Under the pieces are notes generated by a model, which saw only the letters and a list, made by a program, of their open reading frames with translations, made no database searches and was not told the DNA's origin. Shown here in pieces: positions 3,101 to 62,500 of a stretch of DNA of 64,000 nucleotides (position 1 is its first letter; every line of letters begins with the position of its first letter). Source of the stretch: Bugula neritina (taxonomy: Eukaryota > Animalia > Bryozoa). The stretch is from the NCBI GenBank assembly GCA_964035545.1, contig OZ037767.1, positions 3,798,707 to 3,862,706 on the forward strand, given 5' to 3'. Position numbers and translations under genes: made by a program.

Positions 3101-4565
3101 TGCCCAGTAAAGTGAAAAAAAATATTATAGTGTATATAAGGAGAGTAAAAATGGTAGCAACAGTTTATTGGCTCTACAAAAGTTACAATGTATTTTATTG
3201 GCTCTACAAGAGTTACACTGTATTTTATTGGCTGAGAGACTAACCTTGACAGGAAGTTTCTGGTCAGACGAATCCTCAATGGCCATGAATATAAGGCAGC
3301 TGAAACTGTACGGAGGTTTACTGAGGATGTGTTTCTGTGGGTTATAAGGGATGTGACACGGGTGGGGTAGGGGGGACGACCCGCTGTTGAAACTAGTGTT
3401 CAGGGAATCGTTTTCTTTTCCTGTTCAAAACAAAATGCTACATAAAAACATGAGCAATGCCTCGCTGGATGGAGCCAACACTTCAGGTGTTTGACAAGGC
3501 AAAACCAACTCAAAAGAAGACAAGCAAACAGTTGAAAGAAAATAAAACCAAGCAACTAAATTTAAAATAGCCAAAGTTGTAAAAAAGATGGAGACACTCA
3601 AGACACACCCACTGTCGACTAACCTGGTAGCTACTAGCAGTGGTTGGCTGTAACAATCAAGCACACGATAAGAAAAACTGGATGTTAACCATGCGACAAC
3701 TTAGCATGCCACGCAGAAAGAAAGAAGCACCTGCTGCTGGGCGTCACAATATAAATCATTCACAGATTGTCTCCATTTTGTTTACAACTTTGTCATGTAT
3801 ACAGATGCGACAGCCAGGATAAAATGATAGAAGGAGAAGAGGAGATAACAACTAATAAGTAAAGCATACCATTGAGTGCAGCAGGCGTACCTGATTCATA
3901 GTCTAGATCTGAAAGATCGTCTTCAGAACTTAACGGGGAGGGGCACAGCCTTCCACTCCCTGTAAAATACATGAGAAAAGAGGCTAGGCACGTGCTACAC
4001 ACATAGCCTTAGGAAACAAACAGTCCACAGCAAGTAGGGGTTGAAGGTGCTACGTACCGCCTATATCCTTCAGCAGATTGCTGTTCTGCAGCCAGTCGAG
4101 GCACGTCAGTTCATCATCCTCAAAGTCGTCCACACCTTTATCCAACCGGATTTGTGAGAAACAGCTCTGCGTCAGGACATCGTTTTCAATTTTCACCTAC
4201 AACGGAGCAACACACACCTAAGACTTGTGGGTAATTATTAAATTTGTCAGTCAATAATCTCTCAACAAAGCTAAGGAATATTTTTCTCCCAACATTCCAT
4301 ATCCAAAGTGAGTTATATAACCAGTGAGCAGATTTCAGAGTGCAATCATGTGACCAGGAAGTTGGTGGGTGGATCAAACCTGAGCCAAGGCGGAGTCTAG
4401 GGCTCCGTTGGTGTAGGTGGAGCTGAGGGAGTTGAGAAGCTTGTTCTTAGAGAGTTGTTCCTGCTCCTCTGTCTCGCCAATTATGACATCATGGAGCGGC
4501 ATCAGGTCATCAGCGTCCATCTGAGGGGGCGGAGAGCGCGCGATAGGGGGTGCTAAAGACGGCAT
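121..4565 (-). CDS. FOXN3: Forkhead box N2/3 transcription factor (multi-exon; 3' end beyond the left window edge)
   Basis: Exons join in frame with GT/AG sites: 4565-4380, 4196-4058, 3959-3891, 3420-3245, 3086-2958, 2088-1958, 1844-1783, 1575-1522, 606-532, 286-121. Translation gives [17 protein letters not shown] (FoxN2/3 N-terminal motif), the forkhead domain [21 protein letters not shown]|[39 protein letters not shown]|[29 protein letters not shown], then [13 protein letters not shown] and DHTY. Likely a co-orthologue of vertebrate FOXN2/FOXN3. The true start may lie in an upstream alternative exon. Confidence 0.95.
3163..3233. repeat. ~30-bp minisatellite, about 2.5 copies, in a FoxN2/3 intron
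   Basis: Repeated unit ttttattggctctacaa(a/g)agttaca. Confidence 0.75.
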
Positions 4566-21100: not shown

Positions 21101-24100
21101 TGTGACAGGATTTGCTTTGGATACTCTGAAACTACTTGATTGGAGATAATGCCCCCCCTCTTCCCCCGCACAAATTGCAAAACCAAGTGATTTCAGAATT
21201 TTATAAGTTTTATTTTACATATATTACACTTCTACCTCTGATACACTCGTAGTTTAACTGAAATACACAAAAAGAAGAACTTACTATAAGATAAGTAGTT
21301 TTGGTGGTGTAACATGACAGAATGCAGTGAGTCAAGGTTCTGGAGACACCATCTGTGCCTTGTGGATAATATGATAATCCATTGGAAAACATTTCTCTAA
21401 GCTTCTGTCAACTTGGAAAAATCTGAAACTACTCCACAAAACACACGATGTGTCTACCCCTATTTGGAACTTATGAAAAATCTTAGTATAAGCAATGGAG
21501 TAACTTATTCTTAATAGGCACACAAGAAATCAAAAGATTCAACTGGTAGAATGTGTTACCTCAATAAACTAGGTGAACGAATGTAGTTTTTATGTAGTAC
21601 TACCCCATAGTCGAAACCTGTGTGTGCAGAATTCCCATTTTCATGTTATTGAAGTTTTTGGACGAAGTCATATGTACTGGATTGCTAGTCAGCTACACTA
21701 CATCAAGAGCACTTGCATAAATTGGGATGACATTTCTCCTGTCACTAGTCGTAGCAAAGTCCCAAGACTACTTTCTCCTGTAACTATTCCAAAATGAAAC
21801 CAAATAGTTGTCATAATTTTGTGCCCAAGCCATGTGACAGACTGCAGTACAAAATGTCAACACAGCCCCAATCATTCACCCAAACATATAACTGAATGAT
21901 TGCCACCACCCGGCTGCTGGAATAAACAGCCTCTGGCCAATTGTTCGTTGAACAACTCAAGAAAAGAGCTGAGTAAAATGACTTACATTTAAATTGATTC
22001 ATCATTTGTTTTGTATGTTGTCAGCTGAGAAGAATGCATCAGAAATCATGGTGTAGCTGTGATAATGTAGATCAACCAATGAATAGGAGAGAACGTCATT
22101 GAAAAGAGATTACTTCATAGAACTGTGCTTTGGTTACTCTAAAACTACTTGACCAGAATACTCCCTCCTCATTGCACGATGGCATAAAAAAATTTTCAAC
22201 TATTTTAAGAATTGTCATGTAGTTGCTCACCAATGTGCTGCATACTCGTACATAGTTGGTAATAGAAATGCTCGCCATAAGATATTCAGTTTTCGCATAT
22301 CAAGTAGAACAGTCAACGTAACAGTGTGCTGGCATGTCTTGAAGACAGTAACAGTCGGAACTAGTCGGAACTGCTGAATACTTTCCATAAATTCTTTTTA
22401 CTAGGGTTACCCTGTAACTACTCAACTAAAGACATACCCTACATCTTTTACAACAGTATATTTGTGTGTGGCAGATTACAATGCAAGCTTAATGGTGTGC
22501 TACTATTTTGTAGTGCCCAAGGTTGTATAACTTGTATACTCACTAATTGGATGTGCAGTTGAGACCTTTCTTGAAAAGATGTGAAATCTACATGTATGTG
22601 AAGCTGAATGACGTAGACTGACCTGTGTGTTCAGAAGGCTAGACAATTCTGCTGTTTCAAACCTAAACCTGGCATTTTTAAGTCAAACTCACTAACATCT
22701 CTCGAGGAAAATAAAATGATGATTTTGAAGCGTGCAAGCAATGACAATTGTATGAACAATATACCGCGGTTTCTCCTTTCTGGAATTAGTGATTCACAAT
22801 GTCTTCATCACCAGAGCTCATAGATAGGCACCCATTTCATCCACTGAGTAGGCAACAATTAAGACGTACTTGCAATTTTCAACCAAGAGAAAGTGTGTTC
22901 ATAACTTGGGAGTCAATCTGAAAGAACTGGACTCAACAAAGCGAGGCAAAAGGTTATATGCTCAATTTCAATTGTTGGGAGCAGAATTATTAGTACTGAA
23001 TTACTTTATTAAACGAAATGACTCAACGTAGAACATGCGTTACCCATACTAGGAAGTTTCAGCTGATCGTGCTTACTGCTCTATGCCTTGAGAGGTCGCC
23101 AGTTGCTGGTCTAACACCATACACAAGAAGCCAAAATAATGCATCCAATTGGAAGATGTAGTGCGATCTAATCAGCTTTTCCTGGAACTATTCAGAAGAA
23201 ACACCGAATGGTTATGTAGTAATTTGTGCCCAAGCTGTGTGACAGACTGCAGTACAGAAAGTCAACACAGCCCCAATCATTCACCCAAACATATAACTGA
23301 ATGATTGCCACCACCCGGCTGCCGATACAATGCAGCCTCAATTTTTTTTAGCAATTTCAAGGTATAATGAAAGGAGAGCATGGAAGACTTACGTTTTGTG
23401 AGTATTCAGTTTATAGGCCATCAGTTGAGAGAGACGCATCGGAAATTATCGCATAGTTTTGGAAACATCAATTAACGAGTAGGATCGAAACGCCTCGGAA
23501 ACGAATGATGCTTTAGTTACTCCTAATTCTAAAATTACTGGACTAGCAACATACTCCTTGATAGCAGTATAACTTATGCTCGTACTCAACTTGACTTATA
23601 AATAAAATTAATATGCTGCCCGATTTGCATAAACGTGGTATGGTTTCATGCTCATGAAAACTGGTAAGACTTACACTACGTTGAACAGGTTTTAGGCCAC
23701 AGGATGCACGATGTGAGGATAAATTTTTGTAAGACGTAGACTTGTGCCTGGAGATGGTAGTCCAATGAGAACACTTCAAAAATTTCTTTCTGCTACGATT
23801 ACTCTACAACTACTCAACCAACAAACACGGCAACCTATCTCTTTACGCCACCTTACTTTGTAGTTTTGCTCTTTCATATAATACAAGTTAAATAGTGTTA
23901 ACAGTATTTCTATAAAACTATATACTCACTAATTTGTTGTGTGGGTATAAAACCCTGATCACTTCCATAGTGTCAGAAATCAGAAATTATAGATGCATGT
24001 GAAAATAGGTGGTGTATGCTGTTAGGCCACACTTTTAGATGCTGAACAATTTCTGCTGTATTGTACTTAAACCTAATAAGCTTTATAGTCCAAACATATT

Positions 24101-24714
24101 CATCGATGAAAATTTTGTAACATTCAAGTATGCAAAAATGTAGACTTGACTGAAATTAGTAGGTATATATGGATAATATGCATGTTTACTTTCCGGAAAT
24201 CTGGTAAAGGCTGCCATTATCTAGATTTGGTATGGAGTCTAACATCCTAGATCTGAATAAAAGCTGACAAACGAGGTGCACTCTCGGCAATTCTTAACCA
24301 ATCACAGGTATACTGAAAACGCGGAAGTAAATCTGAAACAATCCAATTCAACACAAAACGAGGTTATATTACGAAATACCAACAATCCTATCGTGTAAGC
24401 TGTTACCTTAGTAAAATATGTGAACGGTAGACTTTTGAAACACCTGTAACTTGTGATTCTTTATTTGGTTGGGAAGGCGCACATAAATTGGAATAAGAGA
24501 ATTTCTTTCATCACTATTGGTTGTTGAAAAGCCATCTAATACATGACTGCTTTCTCCTGCAACTAATCAGAAGAGACGAAAAATAGTTATGTAGTAATTT
24601 TGTGCCCAAGCCACGTGACAGACTGCAGTACAGAGTGTCACACAGCCCCAATCATTCACCCAAACATATAACTGAATGATTGCCACCACCCGGCTGCTGA
24701 GACAATGCAGCCTC
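15181..24714 (-). repeat. Tandem array of ~1.38-kb units, each marked by a near-invariant ~116-nt structured element (8 copies)
   Basis: Elements at 15181-15296, 16672-16788, 18051-18167, 19425-19541, 20776-20886, 21817-21933, 23223-23339 and 24598-24714. Units between ~16.8 and 20.8 kb are recent near-identical duplicates; the other units are diverged except at short motifs. Confidence 0.92.
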
Positions 24715-25195
24715 TTACACACTCTTGCTTATTTGTCTAATGCATGTAAAGGATGCCCATATTTATAAATTTATAACATATCTACACAAACTATCTGCAC
24801 ACACAGCCATATTGGCTGCCTGACAAAACACGCCAGCTTAAACAGCCAGTAGTTATAGCTGAGCCCACAAGTTCTATTAAAGTTTAGCCAAAACAATAGC
24901 AGAGCTATGAACACTTATAAACAATATAGAACTAGGTATGAATGAACAGGTGAAAAGAACTATATCAACATGGAATTAATATCCAAGTGGTGCTACAATA
25001 TGACCAATAAGCCTTAACCAATACTACAGTGAAGAAATTTCAATATCAAAGAGTAAAATAATAAGATAAACCAAACACACAATTACAGACTATATAGTAC
25101 CAGAGTGAGCATTCGTTATAAAATTCAATTACAAAGCAATGGTTAATGTACAGATGTCGAATAATAGGAGGGAAGTAGACAGCTAGTTAGAAACA

Positions 25196-28109
25196 TTCCG
25201 ATCACACTCTGAGGTAGTCTCATGGGACCGTACTAGTGCAAATAAATCAGTTACAGTCGTCAACTAACTTCAAACATACAAGCAAGAAACACCGGCTGCT
25301 GGTCTGGAAAACAGACATTACAGACATCTTTCGCTTTTTTGAGAAACGTTCTGCTGAGCATAGGTAATATGACTAAGGTTGACCAGCTGAAAATTTGAAA
25401 CAAAGTGGAAAATCCTTACCACAAAATATCAGTTGGAAGCTTCCTCTTCCCATAAATCCATGCAGTATGTGAACCCAAAGGTAAATAGAAAACAATAGAT
25501 AGCGCCACATACAATTTGGTGCCAATTCCAGAAACAAGAAATTAGTGAGGGTACTTAACTAAAGTCTATGTTAGAAGGTTGGTATGACAAAAAGGTTGGT
25601 GAATATCGTGGATAGAAACTCTTTAAAATATTAGATTAAATTGCAAACTAAAATCAAAGTTAATAAGTGACGGGAGGTGGAGATGCTGGAAGTGCAAATA
25701 TAGTTGTAAGAATAACTGCCAGTAGTGTGCTACAATCATGCTGGATAATTTCCCTTACACAGCTTACAAGACACTGCCAGGTTGAGATATAGGGAAAGCT
25801 TCAGTTAAGTAGAAAATAGCGATGGGACACAGGAACACAGCTGAGTGATCAGAATACAATTAGCAGCAAACAATATCCATTAACACAACTAGAATTAGCT
25901 GACAGAACTGGAACAGTTAGTTGACTAAAGTGTCTAAATGAAACAATAAGAATAGAGTTGCTGCAAGATAGATGGGAGCAAAACTTTCCGATCGCACATG
26001 GGTTACCCCAAGGGACCGTACTTAAACCAAGTGAGACAACTAACAGGTAGCATATTAGAATACTTAGCAAGAATATGCAGTATAAATATACCAGACTGTT
26101 ATGGTGAGCGGGAGCACAGTGTAGATGTGAAGGTTTGAAATTAGCAATTACATCATGGATGAGAGCATAGCAAATAGACAATACGCAGTGAAGTTTAACC
26201 AACTAATCGGCATAAAAGTTGAGGGCTGCATGCAAGACAAACTTAGAAAAACACACAGAATTGAAGACAAAACTTAACCGCATGAGGTAAACTTTGTGGC
26301 ATCACGTGATGAGCAAAAAATCAATGCAGATCCAATGACTAACAACTCATTGAATTTTAATACATGATTTTACTGATATGGCAAGCAGTTATACACCTCT
26401 TTAAAAAGCAGAAAGATATCAATTAATGATAATAGTTGGCAATGATGAACCATTAAGCCCTTGCACAAGTTTGATCTAGAACAAAAACAGATTAAGCTGC
26501 AGTAGTAAGCTAACCGTCTAGGCAACTAAAAGCAGTTTCAGACATTGAATCATCAGCGAATTTTTGAAACAAGTTAGCAAAAACACCCAACAAAACTGTA
26601 CTGGCACACTTCGGATTGTTGAATAATAATTAGGTACAAAAAGCATCACCCTTTATATCTAATACCTATGCATTGCAAAAGTTAATTGATGGCAAATCAT
26701 ATTATTAAACTACCTTGGGAATCAGGTGTGCTTGAATAGAAAATAGTGCGGGCCTTTCCGATCACACCAAGGGACCGTACTTGAGCCATGTAGGTGGAGA
26801 AACATTCTCTAGAACTACTTACAGCAGATATTCACCATGTACACGAGAGTAGAGGTCTATTAACAGAGCAGTATAGCAGCTGGTTATTCAGCAGAGAAAG
26901 AAAACTGCTACTTCTAAGAGAGCGTCTTGCCAGAACAGTTAACAGCAACATTTGCCAGGATTGGACAGTGGAGGAATAAAGAAGTACACGTGTAGGATCA
27001 GCGAGAGTCAACACAGCAACAGCAGGGCTGATGAATTTGATTGTGGGAGATTAGTCTACAGAATATCACCAGGAGGCACATGCAAGGCTTTCAGTTTTGG
27101 CACAGAGTTGTCCAACGGTAACAAAGCTATTTCAAGACTTGAAAATTGTGATAGGTGAAAAATGTAGCTGTAGTTTTTTTTAGCAGACTAAGAAAACTGG
27201 CTTCAAATGTCAATCATAGGTAATGCACTTACAATATGCTGTTGACAAGGCTTAGCAAGAAGGTATACATGAATTAGTACCCATCTCAAGATTGTTGGCA
27301 ATCTATCCATTTATAAGTTATTAAAAAACGTTTCACTCTGGAGAGCTGAGTGAGTAGCCCAATGCAATACGACAATCCATCATGCAGGTAAATTGAAGCT
27401 GTGCTCAACAGACAACCATTTCAACAATGAGCAAAATAATCATTAAGATCTACCACTACTTTGTCAGTTCTAAAAATATTAAATAAACAAACACATATTG
27501 AAGGTAGAAACAGTTGCAAACAGAAAGTTGGCTTTGCATTTTGAGTTATGGTGCTTGCAGCTTGTTTAGTGAAAAGGCTACCTTCCGATCACTCAAAGGG
27601 ACCGTACTAGGGTTATTCAACCGCATACCAACATAAATCAAATTGTGTTGTTTTATATCTGGCATGTTAACTTCAGCCAACTTTTAATTATATGATAGAC
27701 AGAAGAAACACAAAAAGACAAGAAAACATTTTAACTAAAGTATTAATAAAACTTCATTACAAAGAGACATACACTGCAGTAGTTATGAGCAGCAAACGGG
27801 GCTCTAATAGCAATTTAGTCCATACAGAAATAAAAAATTATAATAGCGTGACAGGAATAATTGGAACATGGGAATGGTTCGCAGTGTGGTTGGCAATGGC
27901 ACATGCAAAATAGCTTTGAAAAACTACTTGGATATTAATGATTGCATTGTAAGAAAAATACTTGACAATCAAAGGCAAAAGAGCAGCAGTAGCTACTACG
28001 GGTAGAGTGATATAAGTAGGTGTGGTTAAATACTCAAGTGAGAACCAATTCCGATCACACAAGAACCAGCAGCACCAGAGAAGAAACCACCAGTTCAAGG
28101 GACCGTACT
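25196..28109 (-). ncRNA. Five copies of a loop-E-like structured RNA motif (AGUA-CGGUC-CC[variable]-GAUCG-GAA)
   Basis: Copies at 25196-25234, 25986-26022, 26756-26781, 27583-27608 and 28049-28109. On the plus strand each reads ttccgatc...gggaccgtact, with unrelated flanks and a variable self-complementary insert. Confidence 0.65.
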
Positions 28110-30229
28110 CTGTACCGAGTGTTACACAATTCTGTTCTATTCTTGTTAGACGATACAACATCAAAGCAGCAGCACAGCAGCCATCTACTTCTTAGAACTG
28201 ATAGGAGGGAATTGTATTCATAAGTCTAGAAGCTACCGGACGGACGGTCATCGCTCAAGCACAACAGCTAGACAGAGAGAGAGATAGAGGGTGTCCGTTG
28301 AGTTAGCTATGAAATAGAGTTAACCAAAACAATCCAAACAAAGTGAGTGAGAAAATAAGGTTTGGCCAATTTTAAAGAAAAGCTGTGAACCTTACAAGTG
28401 TCGATTAAGAGGCATGCTGAAGGGTTATAAGATCATACACACAGGGTTCGCATAGCCTAGAAAAATCACAAAATTTAGCTAAGCTTCCATTCTATGCTAC
28501 CGCCAAAGTAAATAAAAGAGATGTAATTATCACCAGAATCTAGCAGTGTTTAGAAGCATACAAAGAGTGGTTACTGAAAAATACATTGTTTACAGTTTAG
28601 GAAATTTGTGATATCAGCAGATAAAAAAATCTTTATAGCTCGCTTGTGCATTGCAATAACTAAACTAGCCAATAATTAAAACACGGAAATGGCATTATAT
28701 CAAACATAGATTAGAAACACCAAACACAACTAATTATTGAAAGTTACAATTAGGCAAATAAGACCGAAAGTGACAACAGATGGCAAGGAAAAGTACCTGG
28801 TTCTAGACATAGGACTGGGTCACAAGTCAAAGAATTAAATTCAATTCACCATTTCCACCAAAGCACTTAACTAGCTAATGCATTGTGGATACTTGCAATA
28901 GAATTGCCTCCTTCACCAATATTTTTCATTCATAGGAAGGGCTTCAATATGCAAGTGGATCGAAGCCATTGATTTATTCTGATTCTGCTTTTTGTATGGA
29001 GGGGTCATAAATTTAATAAGAGACAACATCGCCAAGTTAGAACTTAACCATGCACATAGTGAGAGGCTTTCAGGAAACATTCACATAGCTACAATAGAAA
29101 AAAAAAACTTTTTTCAGACTTGGGATTGCATTGTGGGGTTGTAGAATTCTTGAGCATCAAGGAAATGATGATCCAAAACATGGTTGCTTCTAGATTCCCA
29201 TTTTATTTAGCTGATGCGATTGAAGGCCAAAACTATTTTTAAAGTTCCAAGTGATTTTGCATCAACAAAAAGTTGTAAAAGACAACGAAGCTTTTCTTGG
29301 TTTCAGCATTGAGCGCCGTTCGTCTTAAATTCATCTGTAGGTAAGGTAAAAAACCATAAAAAATAAATTTACTTTTAATGATTCTTAAAATTAGCTCCAA
29401 CAAGCTACCCCAGGAAAAAATTTAATTGCGTCAAATTTATGATCACTTCTGTACATTAACGATAGTTTTACCAAAATTTAACTCTGTATTTGTGCTTTAC
29501 AGTTGCAGCTATCGACTCGGAACACTTTAAATCACAAAACTTTTCATGACTTAAGCTAGGTTTGTTGAATTTGAAGCAAACTAAAATAACTTACAGAGTA
29601 ATATAAAATCAAATTTAAAATTGAATATAGTTTATATACTAATAATACACCAAATTGAAATCTAATGCTTATGCATACTTTCAACTGCTACACTAACACT
29701 TATTCTTACTGTTAACACTAAGTCCAACAGTAACAGTAACACTAATGACTAACTAGAACTAGAATTAGAATTATTGAATTTGATAAACCTACACTGACAG
29801 GCTACAAGTACATTTCACAACTAAAACTTTTAGTTTTAAAAAAGTTAACTAAAAGTAAAACTAATAAAATAATCATAATTTAAATTACAATGATGATAAT
29901 CAAAACATGAACACTAATCATAAAAATAACTCTAAATGATTACTAACTCATCATGATCAGATTCAAAATGATATTCATATTCATATTGATAATCATTATC
30001 ATAAACTTAAAGAAACTAGAAAGTATTAAGTAGAAACTGAAAGTCAGTCAAAGTTACCAAACTCAAACTGCTTCTGTGGTTTGTAACAACCCATGTCAAT
30101 ATTTCCATCAAATATTGAAACATAAACAGCTGAGTACAACAGGAACATTACAAATGATGGATAAGTTTTTTGTTATACTAAAAAGAAACAATATTTCATA
30201 ATTATAAAGAAATGAAAACACTATTGCAC

Positions 30230-31948: not shown

Positions 31949-34900
31949 TTACATCAGCAATTCATCATCCATATTAGCTGCGGCCATATATGCATCTAAT
32001 TCATTGTCCAATGAAGACTTGTTAGCTGTATTAGCTCCGCCTCCTCTCCCACCACGTCGAGCGCCACGCCCCCTGCCTCTTACAGCACCTCTCCCACCTC
32101 TACCGGTACCTCTACCCCTACCACCACGCCTGTGTAACAATGAATGGCATTCATCATATAGATATGCACACATATATATACCTATAATATAACTTATTGA
32201 GTACAGTTGTGGACATGCTGCAAGTGGTGCACGGGTTTACCATACTTCACGAAAAACCCTGCAACAGTAGAAAATATTTACCACAGCCTAGTAGAATTCT
32301 ACAAAGCACAACCTCATTTTCTAGGAAACATAAAACCTGCTACATTCATAGGAAGCATGTGCTAGGTGTGAGAATGACATATTGATTTACCCCCTTGAGT
32401 TTTCAAATGTCATAGATTGTTGAAAGCCTTCTCTAGATCCGCCCCTGAATGCTCCTCGCCCGCGACTGACACCTCTTTGGGGCCCCATAGCTGCACCCCT
32501 TCTACCTGAATCAGGAAAATCATGCTGTCAACATTCAATTTCCTAAACTTAGATATAGTCTTAATGAATTTTAGAATTATCACTTACAACAGTTAAAGAT
32601 ATTTACAACAGGTGATAGCATAGTTAATGGGGTTATAAAATGAGAGAGATGTTGATAGCCTTTGCTAGCTAAAGCTGATATGGCGGGCAGTTGGTAGGAC
32701 CCCCTCTCTCTTCTGTCAGAGTGATAAGATACCGTACGCAGATATCGCCAGTAAATTCCTTCTTTAAAACATGACACCAACTAACAGTACGTGCATTTGT
32801 TGTGAAAAATCAACCAACCTCCACGTCCTCTCATAGACACGCCCCTTCCTCTTCTAGTCACTCCCCCTCGACCTCTTGGAATACCTAGTCTCTCTATAAA
32901 AGACACGGGACAAACAAATAGAGAGCTTGGTTATAAAATGTCAAAACATCTTAAGACACTTACTACTACAAGTTGAGGATTGATTGTAATACTAGCTATA
33001 TTATGTTAGATGCTATACTCACTATACTATGTTAGATGCTATACTAAGTTAGATGCTATAATAGGCTAGATGCTATACTACTTTAGATGCTATACTATGT
33101 TAGCTGCTATACTATGTTAGCTGCTATACTAGGTTAGCTACTCTACCTTTCACATCAGATACTGGTGAAGCCAGAGCGGCACCACCGCGAGGACCCCCTC
33201 GCCCTCCCCTGCCTCTGCCACGCAATGTCATGCGGGACCTGAGGGCAGGCCTCCTGCTTGCCGGGGCTCCCCTCCCTCTACCAGAGAAAGATGGCCGTCC
33301 GTCTCCAGCACCACCTCGGCCAGAGGGCTCTGACTTGACCTATTTAGTAGAAAGGAATTCATGTTACATAGTGATAGCCTGTGAGAATATAATTATTCAT
33401 TCTCTTACCTGACTTACTCTATTATGAACACAACTAAACAATGCATTGGTATTGCAAATGGAGTGTACGTATTTAAAATCTAAAATGTTGAAACATCTCC
33501 GAAGTTATCTTCTCGTAAACCATAGCAAACTTAAGCTATAGAACTTCAAGTATTACACAGAATATCACTTAGAAAAGGCAAGTCAATGTCATACCAACTT
33601 TACAAAGTGATATGACAGCGATGTAAGTTTACAGCTGGTAACATTCTACTTAAAATTAGCAGAATAACTTGGCAATTACTAAACACCAGGAAATAAGAAC
33701 CATTAGAAGAGGCGTATTTTACTACTTAGCATAGCATAGTCTATTTCAACAAGAATAATGACATTGTTTCTATAGTTGGTGAGATGTACATTTCTACAAG
33801 AGATTAGTTGATTCCAAGGTGAAGGTCTGAGCCATGGTGCTTTCTTCTGATGTAAAGACAACTCCAAATAATAATCATCTGAATAAATGTAAAGATAATG
33901 CTAGTTGATTAGCTACCAGAGAATGCCGGTTTCTAGCGAGTACAGATAATGACATAATAACCCGTACCTGGGAGGAATTTCCCAATGCTAGCTGCACACT
34001 CGGCCGGTTGGCCATCTGCGCTGCCAGTCTTCTGTTTTTTGCCGAGGCTTGCTGCTGAAGGATCCTCTGTTGCTGACTTTGCTTCTGGCGGGCATCTTGC
34101 TGGGCTGGTGTCGGTTTGGGCAGCTTCTGGAACCTGCGAGTCAAGGTCGTTTAACATGCACACCACGAAACTTAGAAAAGTGAATCCCTATTGGTCAGCT
34201 TACAACAAAACTTAAGATCTTATTGGTCAGCAAACTGCATTAGAGCTGCCAACCTGTTGGGGTGATTAAGGAATACACAGTCCTTATAAAAACACACACT
34301 TATTAGAGTTCATATTCCCATAAAGTTGTGTTTTAATATACATTATTTTTTACTTCAAATCAGCAAATAAATGCCAAGAGAGGCAGTTTTATCTGTATGA
34401 AGACGGTTTTGGAAAGGTGAGGATTTATTTCAGCCATAGAACTTGGCACAATGGTAGCCTCTGCCACACAAGTATTTGCAATAACACGACAGTATTACAG
34501 CAAACAGGGTGAATGGCTACACAATATGATATTCACCCAAAATTCTACACGCTAATAGTTTTGTACCAACTCTTGGTGGTGAAGTCAAATGAGGCCACTC
34601 ATTGGTGCTTGGTGAAAGAATTACAGGTTTTAACGCCAGTCAAATATAGGAGAAAATAACTCCTGCATCTATGATGTAAGCGTGTTTTGCTTGCAATAGA
34701 ACATGGCATACAGCATGTGACCATTTTACCAGAGTAACTGAACTGTATATGTATCAAGTCTTAGGTTCATATCCCAGACAGACCTGTAATGAGTCAGAGC
34801 TGACACCACACTGCAAGTGCTTGTGAGCTCTCAGAGATCAGATAGATGCAAGAGAAAGCAAACTTATAATTATTAGAGAATCGTGAAGCAGGTATGAACC

Positions 34901-35223
34901 AGAAAGCCTCTACTCTATTAGCATACCAGATGCTACGAGTTTGACAAGCTGCTTGGCTTAGCTGCTACGGAAAACAGTAAGTCAGCTGGCAGTTTTCTGC
35001 TTTTGATTGGTGCATTTTTTGGTTATAATGTAACCAACCAATCACAGCTTTGCCTTATAAATCAGGTTATCAATGATGAAATCATTGACCATATTGCTGA
35101 ATACATGTTCCGTATAGGATCAGTGTAGACCTGATCTACAGTTAGCTTGTCACCTCACCTTTCATTCAATGAAATTCTTGAAGTGCCTTCGAGCACTAGC
35201 TTAACAGGCATATTACTTGCCAT
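31949..35223 (-). CDS. CHTOP: Chromatin target of PRMT1 (CHTOP/FOP), RGG-rich mRNA-export cofactor
   Basis: Exons 35223-35159, 34133-33968, 33339-33147, 32893-32819, 32504-32391 and 32129-31949 join in frame. N-terminus MASNMPVKLVLEGTSRISLNERF..QQQASAKNRRLAAQMANRPSVQLAL, central RGG/GAR region, C-terminal UAP56-binding-type motif SLDNELDAYMA. Confidence 0.93.
33000..33140. repeat. 17-bp minisatellite in a CHTOP intron
   Basis: Repeated unit gttag(a/c)tgctatactat, about 7 copies. Confidence 0.8.
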
Positions 35224-47654: not shown

Positions 47655-54890
<7,236 letters not shown>

Positions 54891-55286
54891 GGTGCTATTA
54901 AAAAGTTCATTATTGATATACAAATATCTTATACTGCGTGTTGAATTAAATAAATTGACAGATTCTATTGGTCAACAAAATCTTCCCTCTCTTCGCTTTT
55001 CTACAAATATGTATTGCTCATATATATACTGCCATAAAAGAATATCATGCTTTTGTAAGTTTCACTAACATATATAAGTAATATAACTTACATTTTCTGT
55101 AATCTTAAGGCAGACTCAGATTGCCTTACCAGGCCCAACAAAAGGCAGAACTCTATTCACCTCTCTGTCTAAAATACTCTGTGTGGGTGCTTGTAGTGTG
55201 CGGCTCACTGAATTCTCATTGTTTGCTTTAGTCAATGCAATTTTGAATATTATACTGCAGTCAATGAAGGGGCTTTTTGCAAGCTT

Positions 55287-55296
55287 GGGACTTTCC
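55287..55296. promoter_or_regulatory. Canonical NF-kB site upstream of TRIM copy 2
   Basis: GGGACTTTCC in a promoter block nearly identical to that of copy 1. Confidence 0.6.
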
Positions 55297-56563
55297 CCTT
55301 TTCAGCTATATGTGTGATCAATCTAATCAGAGCTACAATCTATATTCTGGACTCAAAGGTCTTTGGCTATTGAAATCAAAAACAATCTAATGCATATTAG
55401 TTTAGAACAATGCCTGTCTCTAATAACTAATTAGATCAATTCCAACCAATGGCCACTACTGCACTTCCACATAGCAACTTATAATGCTTTTTGCAGTTAA
55501 CATAAATCAACTACAATTAGAAAGTATTCAAATATGAAGACTGTTTGTATAAAATCTCCACCCCTGGGATAGCCTCTGAGGGCTATAGAGAGAGTTTTTC
55601 AAACCAAACTGCAGGCGATGGATTGTGCATGTTTTAACAGAGTACCAATTAGTATCTGTTGCTTTTCCTACTTTCCCTACTCTACCTGGCCCTACTAAAA
55701 ACAATTACTTAGTATATGCTAGCTAGGCCATTGCTCCAAGTCTAACCACAGTAGATCATACAGCTTCTCCCTAAATATAACGGTTTAGGAAATTATCTGA
55801 ATTTTCATACAATACTTTTTTTACTGTTTTTAAATTGCCTTTTCATATAATGTGAATGCTAACCACATGGTTTATGAAGGGTGGGAGGACAACTACAAAC
55901 AACTAAATCTTATCATCATCTACTGTCTCTGCTCCAACTGCATATATTGAATTCATCTCACTTGGTTTAGAACACAAATTGTCTTGCTGAAAACGTTGCT
56001 ATGTGCATAATGCCTTTATATTATAAAATTATTTCAGTTTTCAATTACAAAAATTAAATATCTTTAGCAAACACAGTTCCGACTTTGTTTCCCATTTTTA
56101 TTCATGCCTACTTATTATAGCTAGTATTTACACTGAATTTCGCAACGTGCTTTTATGTCTGTGAAATGTAATAAATCAATCATTCAATCAAATAAAAATC
56201 AATTGCTAAAATGTTGTAGTTACTAGCCCCTAATATTGACAATAAAATATTAGAGCTGCTTTCAGTCATCAATACCTGGAATTTTGTAAGTTAATTTCTA
56301 AGGTGTACTTCATATATATTATTATTGATTACATCTGAAAAATTCACTGCGTCTGATATAAATTTAAGTCGTTTTACTTATTAAAACTCAATTTATACAC
56401 AGAAAGCTGGTTAGTTTACTATAAAAAAAGTTATAACACACAGACATGCAAACGGGTAAATAAAATTATTGCCATAAATTCAAACACCTTTCTACTTGTA
56501 TACATACGTATAAAAAATCATTACAAACAGGAATTATAGTAAATAAAGCTATATAAGCATCAG

Positions 56564-59500
56564 TTACTCAATTTTAAAAACCCTCACAGTTCCGTCAGAG
56601 CTGCACACTGCTAATATATCTCTCTTTACAGCAACACCAATCACATCAGAACATTCTTGAAGTTGCTCATGAGACAAACGGGACACTAGGGTTCCTATTA
56701 AAAATATATTGTAGCATATAATTTATATAAATGACAAATCTATGTATTATTTACAGGACAAAGTTATAGATGTTACGATCTCATAATTGAAAACCGTTTA
56801 CTATTTTTGTTTTAAGAAACAAAATGATTAAACATATTGTTTGGCGTTTTTTAGCATAATAAAACTTTTCACCATTAAATTACTTCAACGCAGGTTTAAA
56901 AAAGTTTTTATCTTACACTGCTTGAAAATTATTAAAAAAAGTAATTCATCAGTATGATGTCTGGCAATTAATTTTTGCAACTAAGTCATCACATGGTAAT
57001 CTGTGTGAAGTAACTAAGGAGCTATCAGCATAATTAAAGATGTAGTCATCAACTTCAAAGCCTTGTAGTAAACCAGCTTTATTTTTATGCATATCAATTG
57101 ACATTTTCATGATGTATGCTATAATGAGATATGCTGGAAGTTGAATCAATCCAAATAAATTAAATACATACCACTTGAGTCTCTAACTACGACTTGCTTG
57201 GAGTAGCTGAAAATCTGGTAAATGTATCCAAATGAGTCTTTAGATTTAGAGCAGCATGATATTTTGCAATCAACTTTTGTTGTTGTCCTTTGAGCTATTT
57301 CCTGGGTTACCCCTTTTGCAGATTCACCATTCACTTCAAGATATTTTTGTAGTAACTGCAATGATTGAAAAGTATTTTCCCTGCCATGACTTGATTCATT
57401 TCTTTTCAAAGCTTTTTCATTCGTTGGATCGAAACGTAGCTGTGCAGACGAGCTGTCTGACTGTATTGAAAAAGGATCTGGTCCAAAGTTAAAAGCCATC
57501 GTGTGACAAATATTGTCAGAAGTAGTGCTATTGGCTATCAGCAGGAAAGACTCGTAACTTGACAAATCTGGCTTCCAAACTTTTACAGCAAAAGAGTTTC
57601 CTTTCATATGAAGCAAGAATTTAGCCGACAAGACTTCTGCTACTGGATACTTTGCAATGGTGGAACTACACAGGCTGTAAACATACAACTGCTTTTGACC
57701 AGACACAAGAAAAGCGACATATGTTTCAAAAACCACCACTGAAGCATCGGCAATAGGATCTGACTCTATCTGCAGCAACTCCTGCTTTACCTGTAAACTA
57801 ACAGTTGAATGCAGATATAGGAAAATCTTATTTTCTACTCGCTGCAGGCTTACAAGCCCATCACGAGTGACCAGGGGTGCAATGTCAAGAAGATGGCCAG
57901 TGGCCTTGTCTGTTCCCAAGTGATTCAACTGTGAGTCCATGATATGTATTTTGTCATGTACAGTCGTGAGTACTAGATTATCGTTGAAAGTCCACATCAT
58001 AGATTTTATATCTTTAATCAACACTTTTTTTAGAACGAGCTCCAAGTTCTCTGGCTTGAATGGCTTTATGGCAAAATGTGGTGTATCTAGAAACAGATGA
58101 GTGTAACATATAGGCTATTATATGCAATGACTCACATACTAATTGAAATTGTAAAACAGTTTAATGGATGTCAGAGTCAGAATATCACAGGTCGAAATAG
58201 TTCAGAATGGTTTGGAAAAAATATATCAGTCTGATAGGTGAATTATCGTTATAGCACTAAGTTATATTGCAAGAGTTATCGTAGCAATCCAAGTGGATAT
58301 AAAAATGATAAACAGTCATGATTTATCTGATAATCTTTCTAGTACATTATCCACCTAAAACAATACCTAGGATTAACTGTTCAAAATACCAGAAATATTA
58401 TGGAAACATGTTTATAGCTGGTCAAGGCATGACTGGAAAATCGATACTACATCAGTATTACTTAGAAATGGTTGCAAATTTTTAACTTTATAGCAAGAAT
58501 ATAGAGATCTTGAATATTCAATGCTATTATAACGAAGTCATTTCAAACTTGAGCTAACAACATTTTTTAATGTCCAAATAAATTGTTACTAACATGCGTG
58601 ACATTGTATGCTTGTACTTTCCAGCTCCATACACTTAATATTTTTCTGTAGGGCTGCTTCAACATCTCCTTTTTGTTCATGCAGTGTTCTAATGATATCT
58701 GGAAGACTACTTTCCTCGCTACATTGAGTCAGAACTTGTTCCAAAGTCTTTAGATTCACCATTTGTGATTCTATCTTTAGCGTGTGGTTAGCAGCTTTCT
58801 CCGAGTGATCAACCACTTTGGCAATGAGTTGTTGCTTGAACTCCTCTGCTTTCATAGTCATCTTTTTGTACTTTAAACATACATCATTAAACTTTCAACA
58901 AATTTGCCAAAGGATTATTTACGAAAACATAAAATTTAAAAATAATAGGTTGCAAAAACCAAACTGCAATAGCTTGAAAGCCCTCTAAAATCAACATTGT
59001 GATTAAAAAATTATTTACGTCATTTTGAAAAAATCTATTATTGAACTTTTCATCCTTTTGTGACAAAATGGTATCTTTAGTTCATTTATAAAAATTAAGC
59101 AAAAATAAATTTTGCATTTGGTTTTTACATGTGTAGCTTATGTGACCTGCGTTGTAAGTCTAAAACTAAAAGCCAGCTACCTCCTTTTCTACGAAATCAT
59201 CTACTTTGCCTGTCAGTTTTGTAATGTGTCGTTCATTTTCTTCTACCAATTGCCAAGCCTGCTTCTCACTTCTGCAAACTTCAGTTTGTTTTATAGCCAG
59301 CTCTGACACTTGATTGCTGAGCATTTGTCTGCAGTGACTTTCAAAATCTTTAAGAGGAACTGTTTTGTGGGACTGAGGAAATATCTCTGCAAATATCCAT
59401 GTGGCAACACCTTTAATATATGACTTAAATTAGAAGTTGTATTGTTGGCATACTTATTGCTATATTTGGGCTGTGGATTGGGCGGTTAAGACAGTTAGCC

Positions 59501-62500
59501 ATAGTTAAAAAGAACTTAATAGTAATCATAGAAGGTACATTAATTTTGGTTTAGGAAGGAGTGTAAACTCAAGCAAGATGAGCTCAAGCTTTGCAACTGG
59601 CATAGCCTTAAGGCTTGAATCTACATATGCCTTTTAAATTTATATTAATGGAAAAATGGTTCTTTTTTCATGTACAGGTATGTGAGGATTTTACAGTCTT
59701 TTGTTTTTCGCTAGTGGAATAAGGGCGGAACCTGCAATAACAGCTGTTTACAAATTGCAACTTTTGAATTTTCATCATTTATTGTTACTCTGAAGATGAG
59801 AACAGCAGTGCCAAAAATATTAGTCAATTACTTTGTTTAATAAAGTAATAAAACTAAAATGTTACTCGTATACTTATCCATAAAAAAAATATATATATAT
59901 ATGTATGTATATATTTCTAAATTAAGAATAACAAATTGGTTCGCCCTCCAACAAAATTTTATTTGTTTCCTTCAATGATAACTTTTCTCTTACTTTTACA
60001 CAATAGTGTTTTTTTTCCAGAAATTTTTTGTCAAACTTGGTTTTAGAGAGAATTTAGAACACTAACCTGCACCTGCGTTTTGGTTGACCATCTTATTAGG
60101 TGATTCATAGGAAGGTTTATGAGAGTAACATGAAGATACATAAGGCTTCTTAGGTTTCCCTCTGAAGCCCAAACCTTTGCCAGGACGATCTAATTGGCCT
60201 GGATTATTGGCGAGGAAGCCCATAGCATTATCTGTTCTAGAAATACCTGTAACCAAGCTGGTGACATTATTTACAGCTTTTGAAGTAATTTTATAACTAA
60301 AAATTTTTCGAAAATACAGATTGATGCATAATTTTTCTCAGTGCTGTAAATTTACCTACTGTTGCTGAAAAGTTGAAGTAACACCTGCAATGCTATAATT
60401 GCTGTTTTCATGAAGCTTAGCAATATTTATCGTTCTAAAATTATTAAAATTTCTTTTACCTGCATCTTTGTTTTTCTCTCCAAAATTAAACTTGTTCCAA
60501 TTTGATTTGGGAAATAGCAGTGAATGTTTATTATAGTCTTCCATTCTTAATTCCTAAAAGTATCATTTGCAGATTGTTTACAGTTCAAAAGGTTAAAAGG
60601 TAGCTCAGACCGAAGTAATATTTGCTAGTATTTCCATAAAAAACATTTGCTTTCTAAGGAAGTTACTTACATGCAACTATACTGCAAGTGTTGAAAATAC
60701 AATGAATGAATAATTATGGCATTGCGTTTTTATTAAAAAACATCACAACTCTAAGTCAATAAGTTTTCTCACAGTTTAACTTGCTTTTCGTACCCCAGTG
60801 CCTGGTGGTGCAGAGTCAGATAAAAACTGGCTGGTACTGAGAGCTTGAAAACCTGTTTTAGATGTGGATAGCGCTGATCCCCAGCTATTAGTAACATAAC
60901 TTGTTGATGGTTTTGCTGGTTCTGTAGTGGCTCCAAAGCTGAAACCAGTTGCTGGTTCTGTAGTGGCTCCAAAGCTGAGGCCAGTTGCTGCTCTTGTAGA
61001 GGCTCCAAAGTTGAAAACAGTTGCCGGTTCTGTAGCGGTTCCAAAGCTGAGGCCAGTTGTTGCTCTTGCAGTGGCTCCAAAGATGGAAGTTGTTGTTACT
61101 GGCTTACCAAATGGTTGACTTGCAGTAACCACAGACAAGCCGAAAGCACTTTTTGGTCCAAAGATATTTGTAGTGGAATTGGTTGAAGTTTTTACAGTTT
61201 CTGAAGGTGTGGCTCCAAAGATGGAAGTTGTTGTTACTGGCTTACCAAATGGTTGACTTGCAGTAACCACAGACGAGCCAAAAGCACTTTTTGATCCAAA
61301 GATATTTGTAGTGGAATTGGTTGAAGAATCAGATAAAGTAGTGGATTTTGCAATGAAAGGAACTTCAATTAAAGTGGAGCTGGACAATTTTTCAGCAGAT
61401 TTATATGGCACTAAATTAAAATTTACTGGATCTTCAATTCTGTCCTGCCATAAAAATTAAGATATATGCATAAAATAGCAAAACTTGCACCTTACTTTTA
61501 GCTGAATGTTCATGAAAATGGGTTTTTTCAGAAACTTACAAAGTTTAAAAACCTTGAAAAAATAGTTACTATTTTGTAGTAAAATCTTTATGCATAAACT
61601 TGTTTGATTAAAAAGATACTTACTATACTTTCTGAAGAGTCTGGGTTGTTTGTCTCGCATGCCAATTTAATTTTGTTTTCTTTGTTTTCAGCAGATGTAT
61701 CACCTTGACAACAGCAATATCATAAATTATATGTAGAAAAAGGTACACAAATGACATATTAGATTATCATTAGCGCAATGCACTTTAATGATATGTACAT
61801 TTCAATTTTTAAGTTTTGTCTGTACAACACTTGCACAGTTAAACTTCAATCTTGGAATTAATAAACACACACTTGCATTATAAATTTACAACTATTAAGA
61901 CTAGATTACCTGATATTTATTAAAGATTACTGTTTGATAAGGAGTTATGTGATAAAGATTTATTTGATACTTAGGAGTCATTTTACTTCATTTAGTACAC
62001 ATCAGCAAATTATGACCTAAGATTAAAGTTTGCTCAAAATTCATTGAAATTTACTATATTGTGTGGTATTTTTATGTGCTGGTTCTAATTATGCATAACA
62101 AAAAAAGCTGGGAGGGGCTTCCCCAACATTAAAGCACCGTCATTGTCATATGCACTTAATATATAAGTGCGATTGTCATGAAAAAACCGCGATGGTCTAC
62201 AAATATCTAAATTAGCTAAATAATTAGGAAAAACATGAGAAATTAGGCAAAATTAAAATTAAAATTGATTATATAGTTGTATTTATTGATATCAATAATA
62301 TGCTATTAGTTTTGGGTAAAAACCCATATAAATTAGCAGCTAAATTGGGAAAAATACCAAAGACTGGAGATTTCGAGTGTGTACTAAATTAAGTAAAATA
62401 ATCGTATGCCAAACCTTTTACTACCAACTATATTATGATTTATCTTACATAGCAGCTTTATTTGAAAGTGCATAACTATCTTGGTAATAATGTTCAGCTC

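Follow-up and report, generated by a model that had tools for sequence, protein, structure and literature searches.

We have identified a conserved and previously undescribed structured RNA module, with an internal loop of the loop E type (AGUA opposite GAA), in a stretch of the Bugula neritina genome (GCA_964035545.1, OZ037767.1:3,798,707-3,862,706). This stretch of 64,000 nt is referred to below as the window, and the features described are on its minus strand and given in window coordinates. Five copies of the module, M1 to M5 (Table 1), lie between 28109 and 25196 and follow the pattern AGUACGGUCCC...GnGnGAUCGGAA, with AGUACGGUCCC...GYGAUCGGAA as their consensus form. They are carried by one exon of a long non-coding RNA (lncRNA) that is made downstream of the CHTOP gene. 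Beyond what the first-pass annotation of this DNA could show, other organisms have the module too, with every core base unchanged and again near CHTOP in synteny. We suggest, with moderate confidence, that the transcript is a multivalent docking RNA whose invariant core is read by one conserved factor, probably a protein.

The first-pass annotation had described five minus-strand copies, spaced by 0.5 to 0.8 kb and with unrelated flanks, and we found all five where it had placed them. The 11-mer AGTACGGTCCC has five matches in the window, compared with 0.10 expected, and none of 100 shuffles reached five. The start-to-start spacing of M1 to M5 is 501, 827, 759, and 788 nt, and a repeat finder detected nothing in common between the flanks. 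In the 216-Mb genome, the gapped module pattern has no match outside these five places, and two covariance models yielded only the same five copies. At the next-best covariance model place (C1:6536784), neither core half was present on reading. An abundant dispersed repeat, which the annotation had named among the outcomes that would speak against its proposal, or a transposon fragment was rejected, because there are only five copies, at one locus, with unrelated flanks. We encountered none of the outcomes that it had named in this way. A coding repeat was rejected because the module lengths (26 to 61 nt) do not keep to multiples of three and there is no open reading frame (ORF). Rfam 15 gave no match at gathering thresholds in the whole window. 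A permissive Rfam scan of 24700-29100 gave only noise (E of 0.9 to 8.6), none of it on the modules, and no 5S match at E up to 10. In the literature, the 10-mer of the module was absent in any relevant sense; the matches were a primer and a scrambled control oligonucleotide.

We correct the annotation in one respect: it made the 3' conserved half too short, and with it the helix. In the alignment, the 3' half reads G-n-G-n-GAUCGGAA, with both G residues invariant. CGGUCCC pairs with G-n-G-n-GAUCG to form a core helix of 7 bp, which includes a G-U pair and is interrupted on the 3' strand by two bulges of one base each. Nearly all modules have a minimum free energy fold in which the basal helix leads inward to the AGUA/GAA loop, then to CGGUC/GAUCG and a further two C-G pairs, and finally to the apex. 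Each of the two C-G pairs is followed by a one-base bulge on the 3' strand. The apex is dispensable; it is a hairpin of up to 74 nt, or a triloop in the 26-nt forms. The spacer between the two conserved halves ranges from 7 to 74 nt across modules, a tenfold variation. Within the window, folding agreed with the annotation that the long inserts form hairpins and that two copies have only a short loop. The clearest basal helix among the window modules is the GGCU/AGCC-like helix of M3.

We asked how far these helices are supported by covariation. The shuffle z-scores of single inserts were weak (mean, -1.05), as the inserts are short, and therefore the argument rests on covariation counts. We used two alignments: A3, comprising nine equal-length modules and not fitted to a model, and A4, comprising 25 distinct modules fitted to model R2. 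In A3, 87.7% of the cells were paired, compared with 27 to 41% when the partner was slid; eight pairs varied on both sides, compared with 3.0 in shuffles, and none of 500 shuffles reached the observed value. In A4, 83.5% of the cells were paired, compared with 30 to 37% when slid; 12 of the 19 pairs varied on both sides, and 0 to 2 of 500 shuffles reached the observed values. None of the 25 distinct modules departed from the others in the seven core pairs. For the basal helix, the paired cells amounted to 64%, and all six pairs varied on both sides. The basal flanks pair better with their own partners than with those of other modules (46 of 5,000 permutations were as good), and the second basal position was paired in 87%, compared with 55% for mismatched partners. 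The base pair adjoining AGUA/GAA is free, being U-A, A-A, U-U, G-U, and others. Only the invariant pairs were recovered by RNAalifold from a MAFFT alignment (A2), in which the apical hairpins are not matched by structure. The covariation of the basal and apical helices across 25 modules, drawn from several organisms, indicates that the predicted CGGUC/GAUCG hairpin with exchangeable apical parts, as first proposed from the window copies, is real.

We then scanned metagenome contigs with the exact pattern, in which 19 bases were searched, and obtained 92 loci. Most of these are GC-rich single matches of bacterial type. The same scan gave 46 single matches in 596 Gb of prokaryote genomes, against about 130 chance matches by a hand estimate, and no match in viral contigs. 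Thirty loci are distinct: they have 39 to 45% GC, no long ORFs, and up to four copies per contig, 0.3 to 3 kb apart and always on one strand. These loci form six groups (A1, A2, B, C, D, and E). A1 and A2 are about 76% identical, and C is about 62% identical to A, while groups B, D, and E have only the module in common with other groups. None of the groups resembles the window outside the module, and only module words are common to all groups. Four of the groups have nothing but the module in common among themselves. At least four organisms stand behind the metagenome groups. The M5 type is the commonest module type in groups A to C. In two loci, the last exons of CHTOP lie upstream of the modules on the same strand, at 4 kb in L049 (group D) and 6 kb in L100 (group E). 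This order of CHTOP and modules is the order in the Bugula window. AATAAA signals and an A-run, oriented in the module sense, were seen at the end of one RNA contig of group C.

The 21 core bases are identical in all copies found, whereas the sequence on every side of them has drifted. All 60 copies from the metagenome loci and the window are perfect in the 19 searched bases, and there were no copies with one to three mismatches in the fetched metagenome loci or the window. The core is also unchanged between homologous modules of groups A1, A2, and C, in spite of insert lengths of 31, 74, and 30 nt. RNA run X2 comes from a strain that is about 4% divergent from the assembly. Among the first 40 of its 134 differences, which cover M5 alone of the five modules, the only change within a module (25204) falls at a bulged n position.

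To characterize the host transcript, we used assembled RNA contigs from four runs of four studies, mapped to 24001-30000. The joint 28306/28797 has CT..AC borders when read on the plus strand and therefore GT..AG borders on the other strand. Therefore, the host RNA is spliced and minus stranded, as the annotation had assumed for an RNA element on this strand. From 28306 downward, contigs cover 26427-28308 in run X1 and 25725-27041 and 27055-28306 in run X4, and the contigs of X2, an oligo-dT run, cover 24671-27789 and 27763-29090. We found no splice joint inside 24671-28306 in the contigs of the four runs. Because the contigs are continuous and have no internal joint, all five modules lie in one long exon, which settles in favor of exons the question, left by the annotation, of whether they are exonic or intronic. 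There is no ATG-initiated ORF of more than 55 amino acids (aa) on the module strand, and since the longest has 55 aa, the RNA is non-coding. Thus, the host is an lncRNA, spliced in three runs, present in an oligo-dT library, and devoid of a long ORF. Two alternative junctions were seen, 28306/28897 (GC..AG on the minus strand; X4) and 28267/28797 (X7), and some contigs cross the unspliced intron 28796-28307, indicating partial retention. We rejected the idea that A|GUACGG serves as a 5' splice site, or that a branch point or 3' splice site directly follows each module, because the contigs run through these places with no joint.

At the 5' end, 29090 is the last covered position of the contigs in each of the four runs, and 29201-29400 is not covered at all. 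Contigs that extend past the acceptor at 29090 continue into leader letters that are absent from the window. The X2 leader of 25 letters has five exact and two near matches in the genome, and five of these seven lie at C3:31.46-31.63 Mb (L014 to L016) in candidate spliced-leader RNA genes. In these C3 copies, a conserved block precedes the leader, and AG|GTAAAT comes after it, with about 110 further bases that are conserved. This layout is that of spliced-leader RNA genes, and therefore the host RNA is trans-spliced. A second leader variant, of 15 letters, occurs in X1 and X4 and is too AT-rich to place; it has 315 near matches, compared with 85 for a control, and its exact matches have no gene in common. 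Leader-like sequence with the upstream block was also seen at L013 (G000:C2:10831155) and at L006 and L007 (G000:C1). At L013 and L006, the leader is followed directly by other sequence with no GT donor, and these may be retro-copies of trans-spliced RNAs or genes that have the leader exon in common. A shared 8-mer, UACGGUCC, occurs in the candidate spliced-leader RNA genes, and we treated it as chance. We found no literature on trans-splicing in bryozoans and none on a CHTOP-adjacent lncRNA.

AGUA opposite GAA is the bulged-G or loop E motif, known in eukaryotic 5S ribosomal RNA (rRNA) and in the sarcin-ricin loop. The 5S gene of Bugula reads U-AGUAC-UUGG...CCUGG-GAA-U, so the AGUAC...GGAA frame of the module is also found there, in keeping with the loop E signature that the annotation had recognized. 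As in loop E, AGUA/GAA of the module is closed by a C-G pair and placed between two helices. AGUA opposite GAA was invariant in all 25 distinct modules, helices are present on both sides, and the inner 7-bp helix is found in all modules. With loop bases that are constant in every copy found, there are no isosteric substitutions to compare, and the loop E geometry (bulged G triple, trans U-A, sheared A-G, and parallel A-A) is predicted from these features. Several differences set the module apart from its rRNA counterparts. Its helix beyond the loop has its own invariant sequence with two bulges, and the module sits in multiple copies in an lncRNA, not in rRNA, with no Rfam match. A 7-bp helix and a variable apex replace the GAGA tetraloop of the sarcin-ricin loop. 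Compared with 5S rRNA (RF00001), only AGUAC/GGAA is common with the Bugula gene, and the model gives no match at E up to 10. The Bugula 5S genes form an array at G000:C4:11198032-11257314, with at least 47 copies spaced by 789 nt or by multiples of this length.

Other known RNA classes were considered and set aside. A microRNA precursor (stem of at least about 30 bp and a 22-nt product) was rejected because most stems amount to fewer than 15 bp and two of the copies have a full length of just 26 nt. A kink-turn or box C/D element was rejected on reading: there is no GA after GAA on the 3' strand and no CUGA, and GYGAUCG departs from RUGAUGA. We also compared the core, without a model, with the selenocysteine insertion sequence (SECIS), the iron-responsive element, Roquin and Smaug loops, the Y RNA/Ro helix, the 7SK GAUC duplex, group II domain 5, and twister, and none fits beyond five to eight bases.

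What varies and what is fixed in the module suggests how it may work. The core is fixed even in the helix, where pairing alone would allow change, and this argues for direct base reading by one partner. The free basal and apical parts, the several copies per RNA, and the constant strand argue for a multivalent RNA platform. The modules are carried in the long exon of a trans-spliced and spliced non-coding RNA made just downstream of CHTOP. In the scenario we propose, a single conserved trans-acting factor, in all likelihood a protein, would recognize each base of the core. With several sites per RNA (five here and up to four per contig elsewhere), the RNA could serve as a multivalent platform that would collect, titrate, or organize this factor.

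Several points weigh against this docking proposal. The RNA evidence consists of contigs and not raw reads, and contigs do not give RNA ends, levels, or minor isoforms. Alignment A4 was fitted to a model, which favors structure, although the slid controls and the unfitted A3 agree with it. The invariant core has no covariation of its own, so the core helix and the loop E geometry are not proven; because the core never varies, its pairing rests on thermodynamics and on the covarying helices on either side. The search pattern demanded an exact core and would have missed diverged versions, so the invariance holds within the fetched loci. The other organisms could all be fairly close relatives of Bugula, in which case the conservation would be less deep. 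What the analysis shows is the sequence and its uniqueness in the genome, transcription and its strand, the location in an exon, conservation, synteny, and covariation in the two variable helices. The loop E geometry is predicted, the docking role itself is proposed from sequence and structure comparison, and the partner is putative.

The parallel with 5S rRNA raises the possibility that the module is an rRNA mimic or decoy, imitating the 5S loop E arm or the sarcin-ricin stem and titrating its reader. Candidate partners would be a TFIIIA-like or 5S ribonucleoprotein (RNP) protein, a translation GTPase, or a ribotoxin, and this would be a special case of the docking proposal. The AGUAC...GGAA frame is the same in loop E/helix IV of Bugula 5S rRNA and in the sarcin-ricin loop; the shape is also like that of the 5S arm, with loop E, a short helix, a small irregularity, and a hairpin; and there is a plant precedent, P5SM in the TFIIIA pre-mRNA. 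However, beyond AGUAC/GGAA the sequence is unlike 5S helix IV, the module has no GAGA tetraloop, and the Rfam scan of the region gave neither 5S nor any other match at E up to 10. Moreover, the invariant helix has no counterpart elsewhere in the genome, so it copies no rRNA segment. We regard mimicry as unlikely. The same low expectation applies to its broadest form, in which an ancient animal CHTOP-adjacent lncRNA would have as its sole conserved content a 21-base loop E hairpin, acting as a multivalent rRNA-site decoy or assembly platform for a ribosome-linked factor. If true, animals would have a first example of an rRNA-domain decoy lncRNA, whose 26-nt minimal ligand could be used to fish for the partner, and a ribosome-linked partner would mean a new kind of rRNA mimicry in animals. 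No more probable, in our judgment, is that the modules are substrate or sensor hairpins for an RNA-modifying or RNA-cleaving enzyme that acts on a core base and would control the fate of the RNA or of small RNAs from its 3' part. The two invariant bulge-flanking G residues and the G-U pair would suit an active site, the architecture of multiple invariant short motifs on variable stems in one transcript is that of METTL16 and MAT2A, and the same Bugula RNA appears to yield an abundant 117-nt small RNA. But the contigs are unbroken through M1, M3, and M4, giving no sign of efficient cleavage (modifications cannot be seen in contigs), and the 117-nt element is absent from the loci of the other organisms, so the modules are not there to serve it.

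A function that needs no protein, such as RNA-RNA tertiary or intermolecular docking that condenses the RNA, or a small ligand-binding fold, seems to us improbable. Invariant internal loops between free helices are also typical of tertiary-contact motifs and aptamers, and loop E motifs are often docking platforms in rRNA; however, the minimal form is only 26 nt, there is no second conserved element common to the organisms that could be the receptor, and such a function is not known to have a eukaryotic precedent. Still less probable are target sites for a trans-acting RNA (a microRNA, a guide like a small nucleolar RNA, or another guide) that would pair with both conserved halves. Base-for-base invariance is what pairing to an invariant RNA would produce, and nine bases of Bugula 5S rRNA (UCCGAUCAC) could pair with the 3' half. 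That match has a chance expectation of about 1 in 100 by estimate, was found post hoc, and was treated as chance. Since one half is the complement of the other, any guide that matched both of them would self-fold; in addition, the spacer varies from 7 to 74 nt, and the covarying helices on both sides favor an intramolecular hairpin. We give almost no credence to a DNA-level element downstream of CHTOP or an artifact (chance, adapter contamination, or a repeat). It is true that GATCGGAAG in the 3' half resembles the start of an Illumina adapter and that one metagenome match, L031 9861-9899, is plainly adapter sequence (AGATCGGAAGAGC) left at a contig end and not a module. But the Bugula copies are in a chromosome-scale assembly, with GnGn before this sequence and varied sequence after it. 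All copies of a contig are on one strand, which is the transcribed strand wherever known, and the chance expectation is far too low. DNA binding would also not explain a tenfold variation of the spacer with compensating changes in the hairpin.

The docking RNA that we propose has parallels in known systems; the likenesses to roX, MAT2A/METTL16, NORAD, and P5SM are comparisons of architecture. The roX boxes of Drosophila roX1 and roX2 are multiple short invariant sequences in stem-loops of a fast-evolving lncRNA. They bind a protein complex (MLE/MSL2), and roX RNA has been traced across species only by synteny and boxes. The module copies are likewise a short invariant sequence in stem-loops that is traceable by synteny. 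However, the sequence, fold, and partners differ, roX boxes are not of the loop E type, and we saw no link of the module to dosage compensation. The 3' untranslated region (UTR) of MAT2A has six METTL16 hairpins, in which an invariant motif on variable stems copies a site of U6 small nuclear RNA, a housekeeping structural RNA, and is read by this one conserved enzyme. There, the motif lies in the hairpin loop of the UTR of a coding mRNA, whereas the module combines an internal loop with a helix and belongs to a non-coding RNA. Among multivalent sponge lncRNAs, NORAD and others have repeated units with many sites for one RNA-binding protein. NORAD is similar in having exonic repeats in a polyadenylated RNA, but Pumilio sites are linear 8-mers, whereas the module site would be a structured core of 21 bases. 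In plants, the TFIIIA pre-mRNA contains a 5S rRNA mimic, P5SM, which is a 5S-like loop E element that binds a ribosomal protein. It is single copy, in a coding gene, and acts in splicing regulation, and it has a clear likeness to whole 5S domains, which the module lacks.

Few invertebrate non-coding RNAs can be traced between species, and fewer have a recognizable functional unit. The module described here is such a unit: it does not vary, has a defined structure, needs no more than 26 nt, is present in multiple copies, and is syntenic next to CHTOP, a conserved gene for an mRNA export factor. The minimal module would be a ready bait for the putative partner protein, and the covariance model can be used to trace the module RNA through animal genomes. 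The module RNA may thus be a clean case of how a long RNA can lose all sequence but its binding sites.

Table 1. Modules, host transcript, and neighboring features in window coordinates
Feature	Position	Strand	Remarks
Module M1	28049..28109	-	61 nt; long apical hairpin, 42-nt insert; 11-mer and covariance model matches; inside RNA contigs of runs X1, X4, and X7
Module M2	27583..27608	-	minimal 26-nt form, UUU triloop; pattern and covariance model matches
Module M3	26756..26781	-	minimal 26-nt form, UUG triloop; pattern and covariance model matches
Module M4	25986..26022	-	37 nt; apical UGGG-GUAA-CCCA hairpin; pattern, covariance model, and folding
Module M5	25196..25234	-	39 nt; apical UGAG-ACUAC-CUCA hairpin; pattern and folding
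5' exon of the non-coding RNA	28797..29088	-	T-rich tract, then acceptor AG at 29090-29089; contigs and sequence
Intron, partly retained	28307..28796	-	joint 28306/28797 in X1, X4, and X7
Long unspliced exon, at least 3.6 kb	24671..28306	-	all five modules; reaches the first 117-nt element; RNA contigs
117-nt element, most upstream of the eight array copies	24589..24696	-	downstream of the modules
CHTOP gene	31949..35211	-	directly upstream of the module RNA, same strand
CHTOP exon, N-terminal	35211-35155	-	
CHTOP exon, KNRRLA..MANRPSV	34039-33887	-	
CHTOP exon, C-terminal LDNELDAYM	32035-31952	-	

The stop codon of CHTOP is at about 31951-31949, and the first exon of the non-coding RNA starts 2.9 kb downstream of it. 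On the other side, the modules are followed by the eight-copy array of a 117-nt element. The annotation had placed the copies upstream of this array in the same transcript. This is supported by one RNA contig, X2-14, which runs from the modules and ends inside the first 117-nt element (24696-24589), though contigs cannot prove a single molecule. We found no similarity between the modules and the 117-nt element and, by eye, no obvious complementarity; the element is also missing from the module loci of the metagenome groups.

Some further observations concern the metagenome loci and the RNA contigs. L049 has FG-repeat coding sequence upstream of CHTOP (900-1150), as does the window at 51354-61199, so the synteny may span three genes: the FG-repeat gene, CHTOP, and the module RNA. 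In group A, the module units are recent tandem duplicates of 2 to 3 kb (L034 136-516 versus 3148-3527, and likewise in L037 and L101), with identities of about 93% in A1 and 98 to 99% in A2, which mirrors the unit structure of the Bugula array. In the divergent strain, a low-depth X2 contig joins 28090, with the 5' half of M1, to 26067 via 35 other letters. These letters contain a short hairpin, UGAACU/AGUUCA, and a different 3' half (GAGC-GAUCGGAA). The contig is a chimera or else comes from an allele that lacks about 2 kb. Finally, at 24581-24714, around the first 117-nt element, short contigs in X1, X2, and X4 are far deeper than their surroundings, which fits a stable small RNA.

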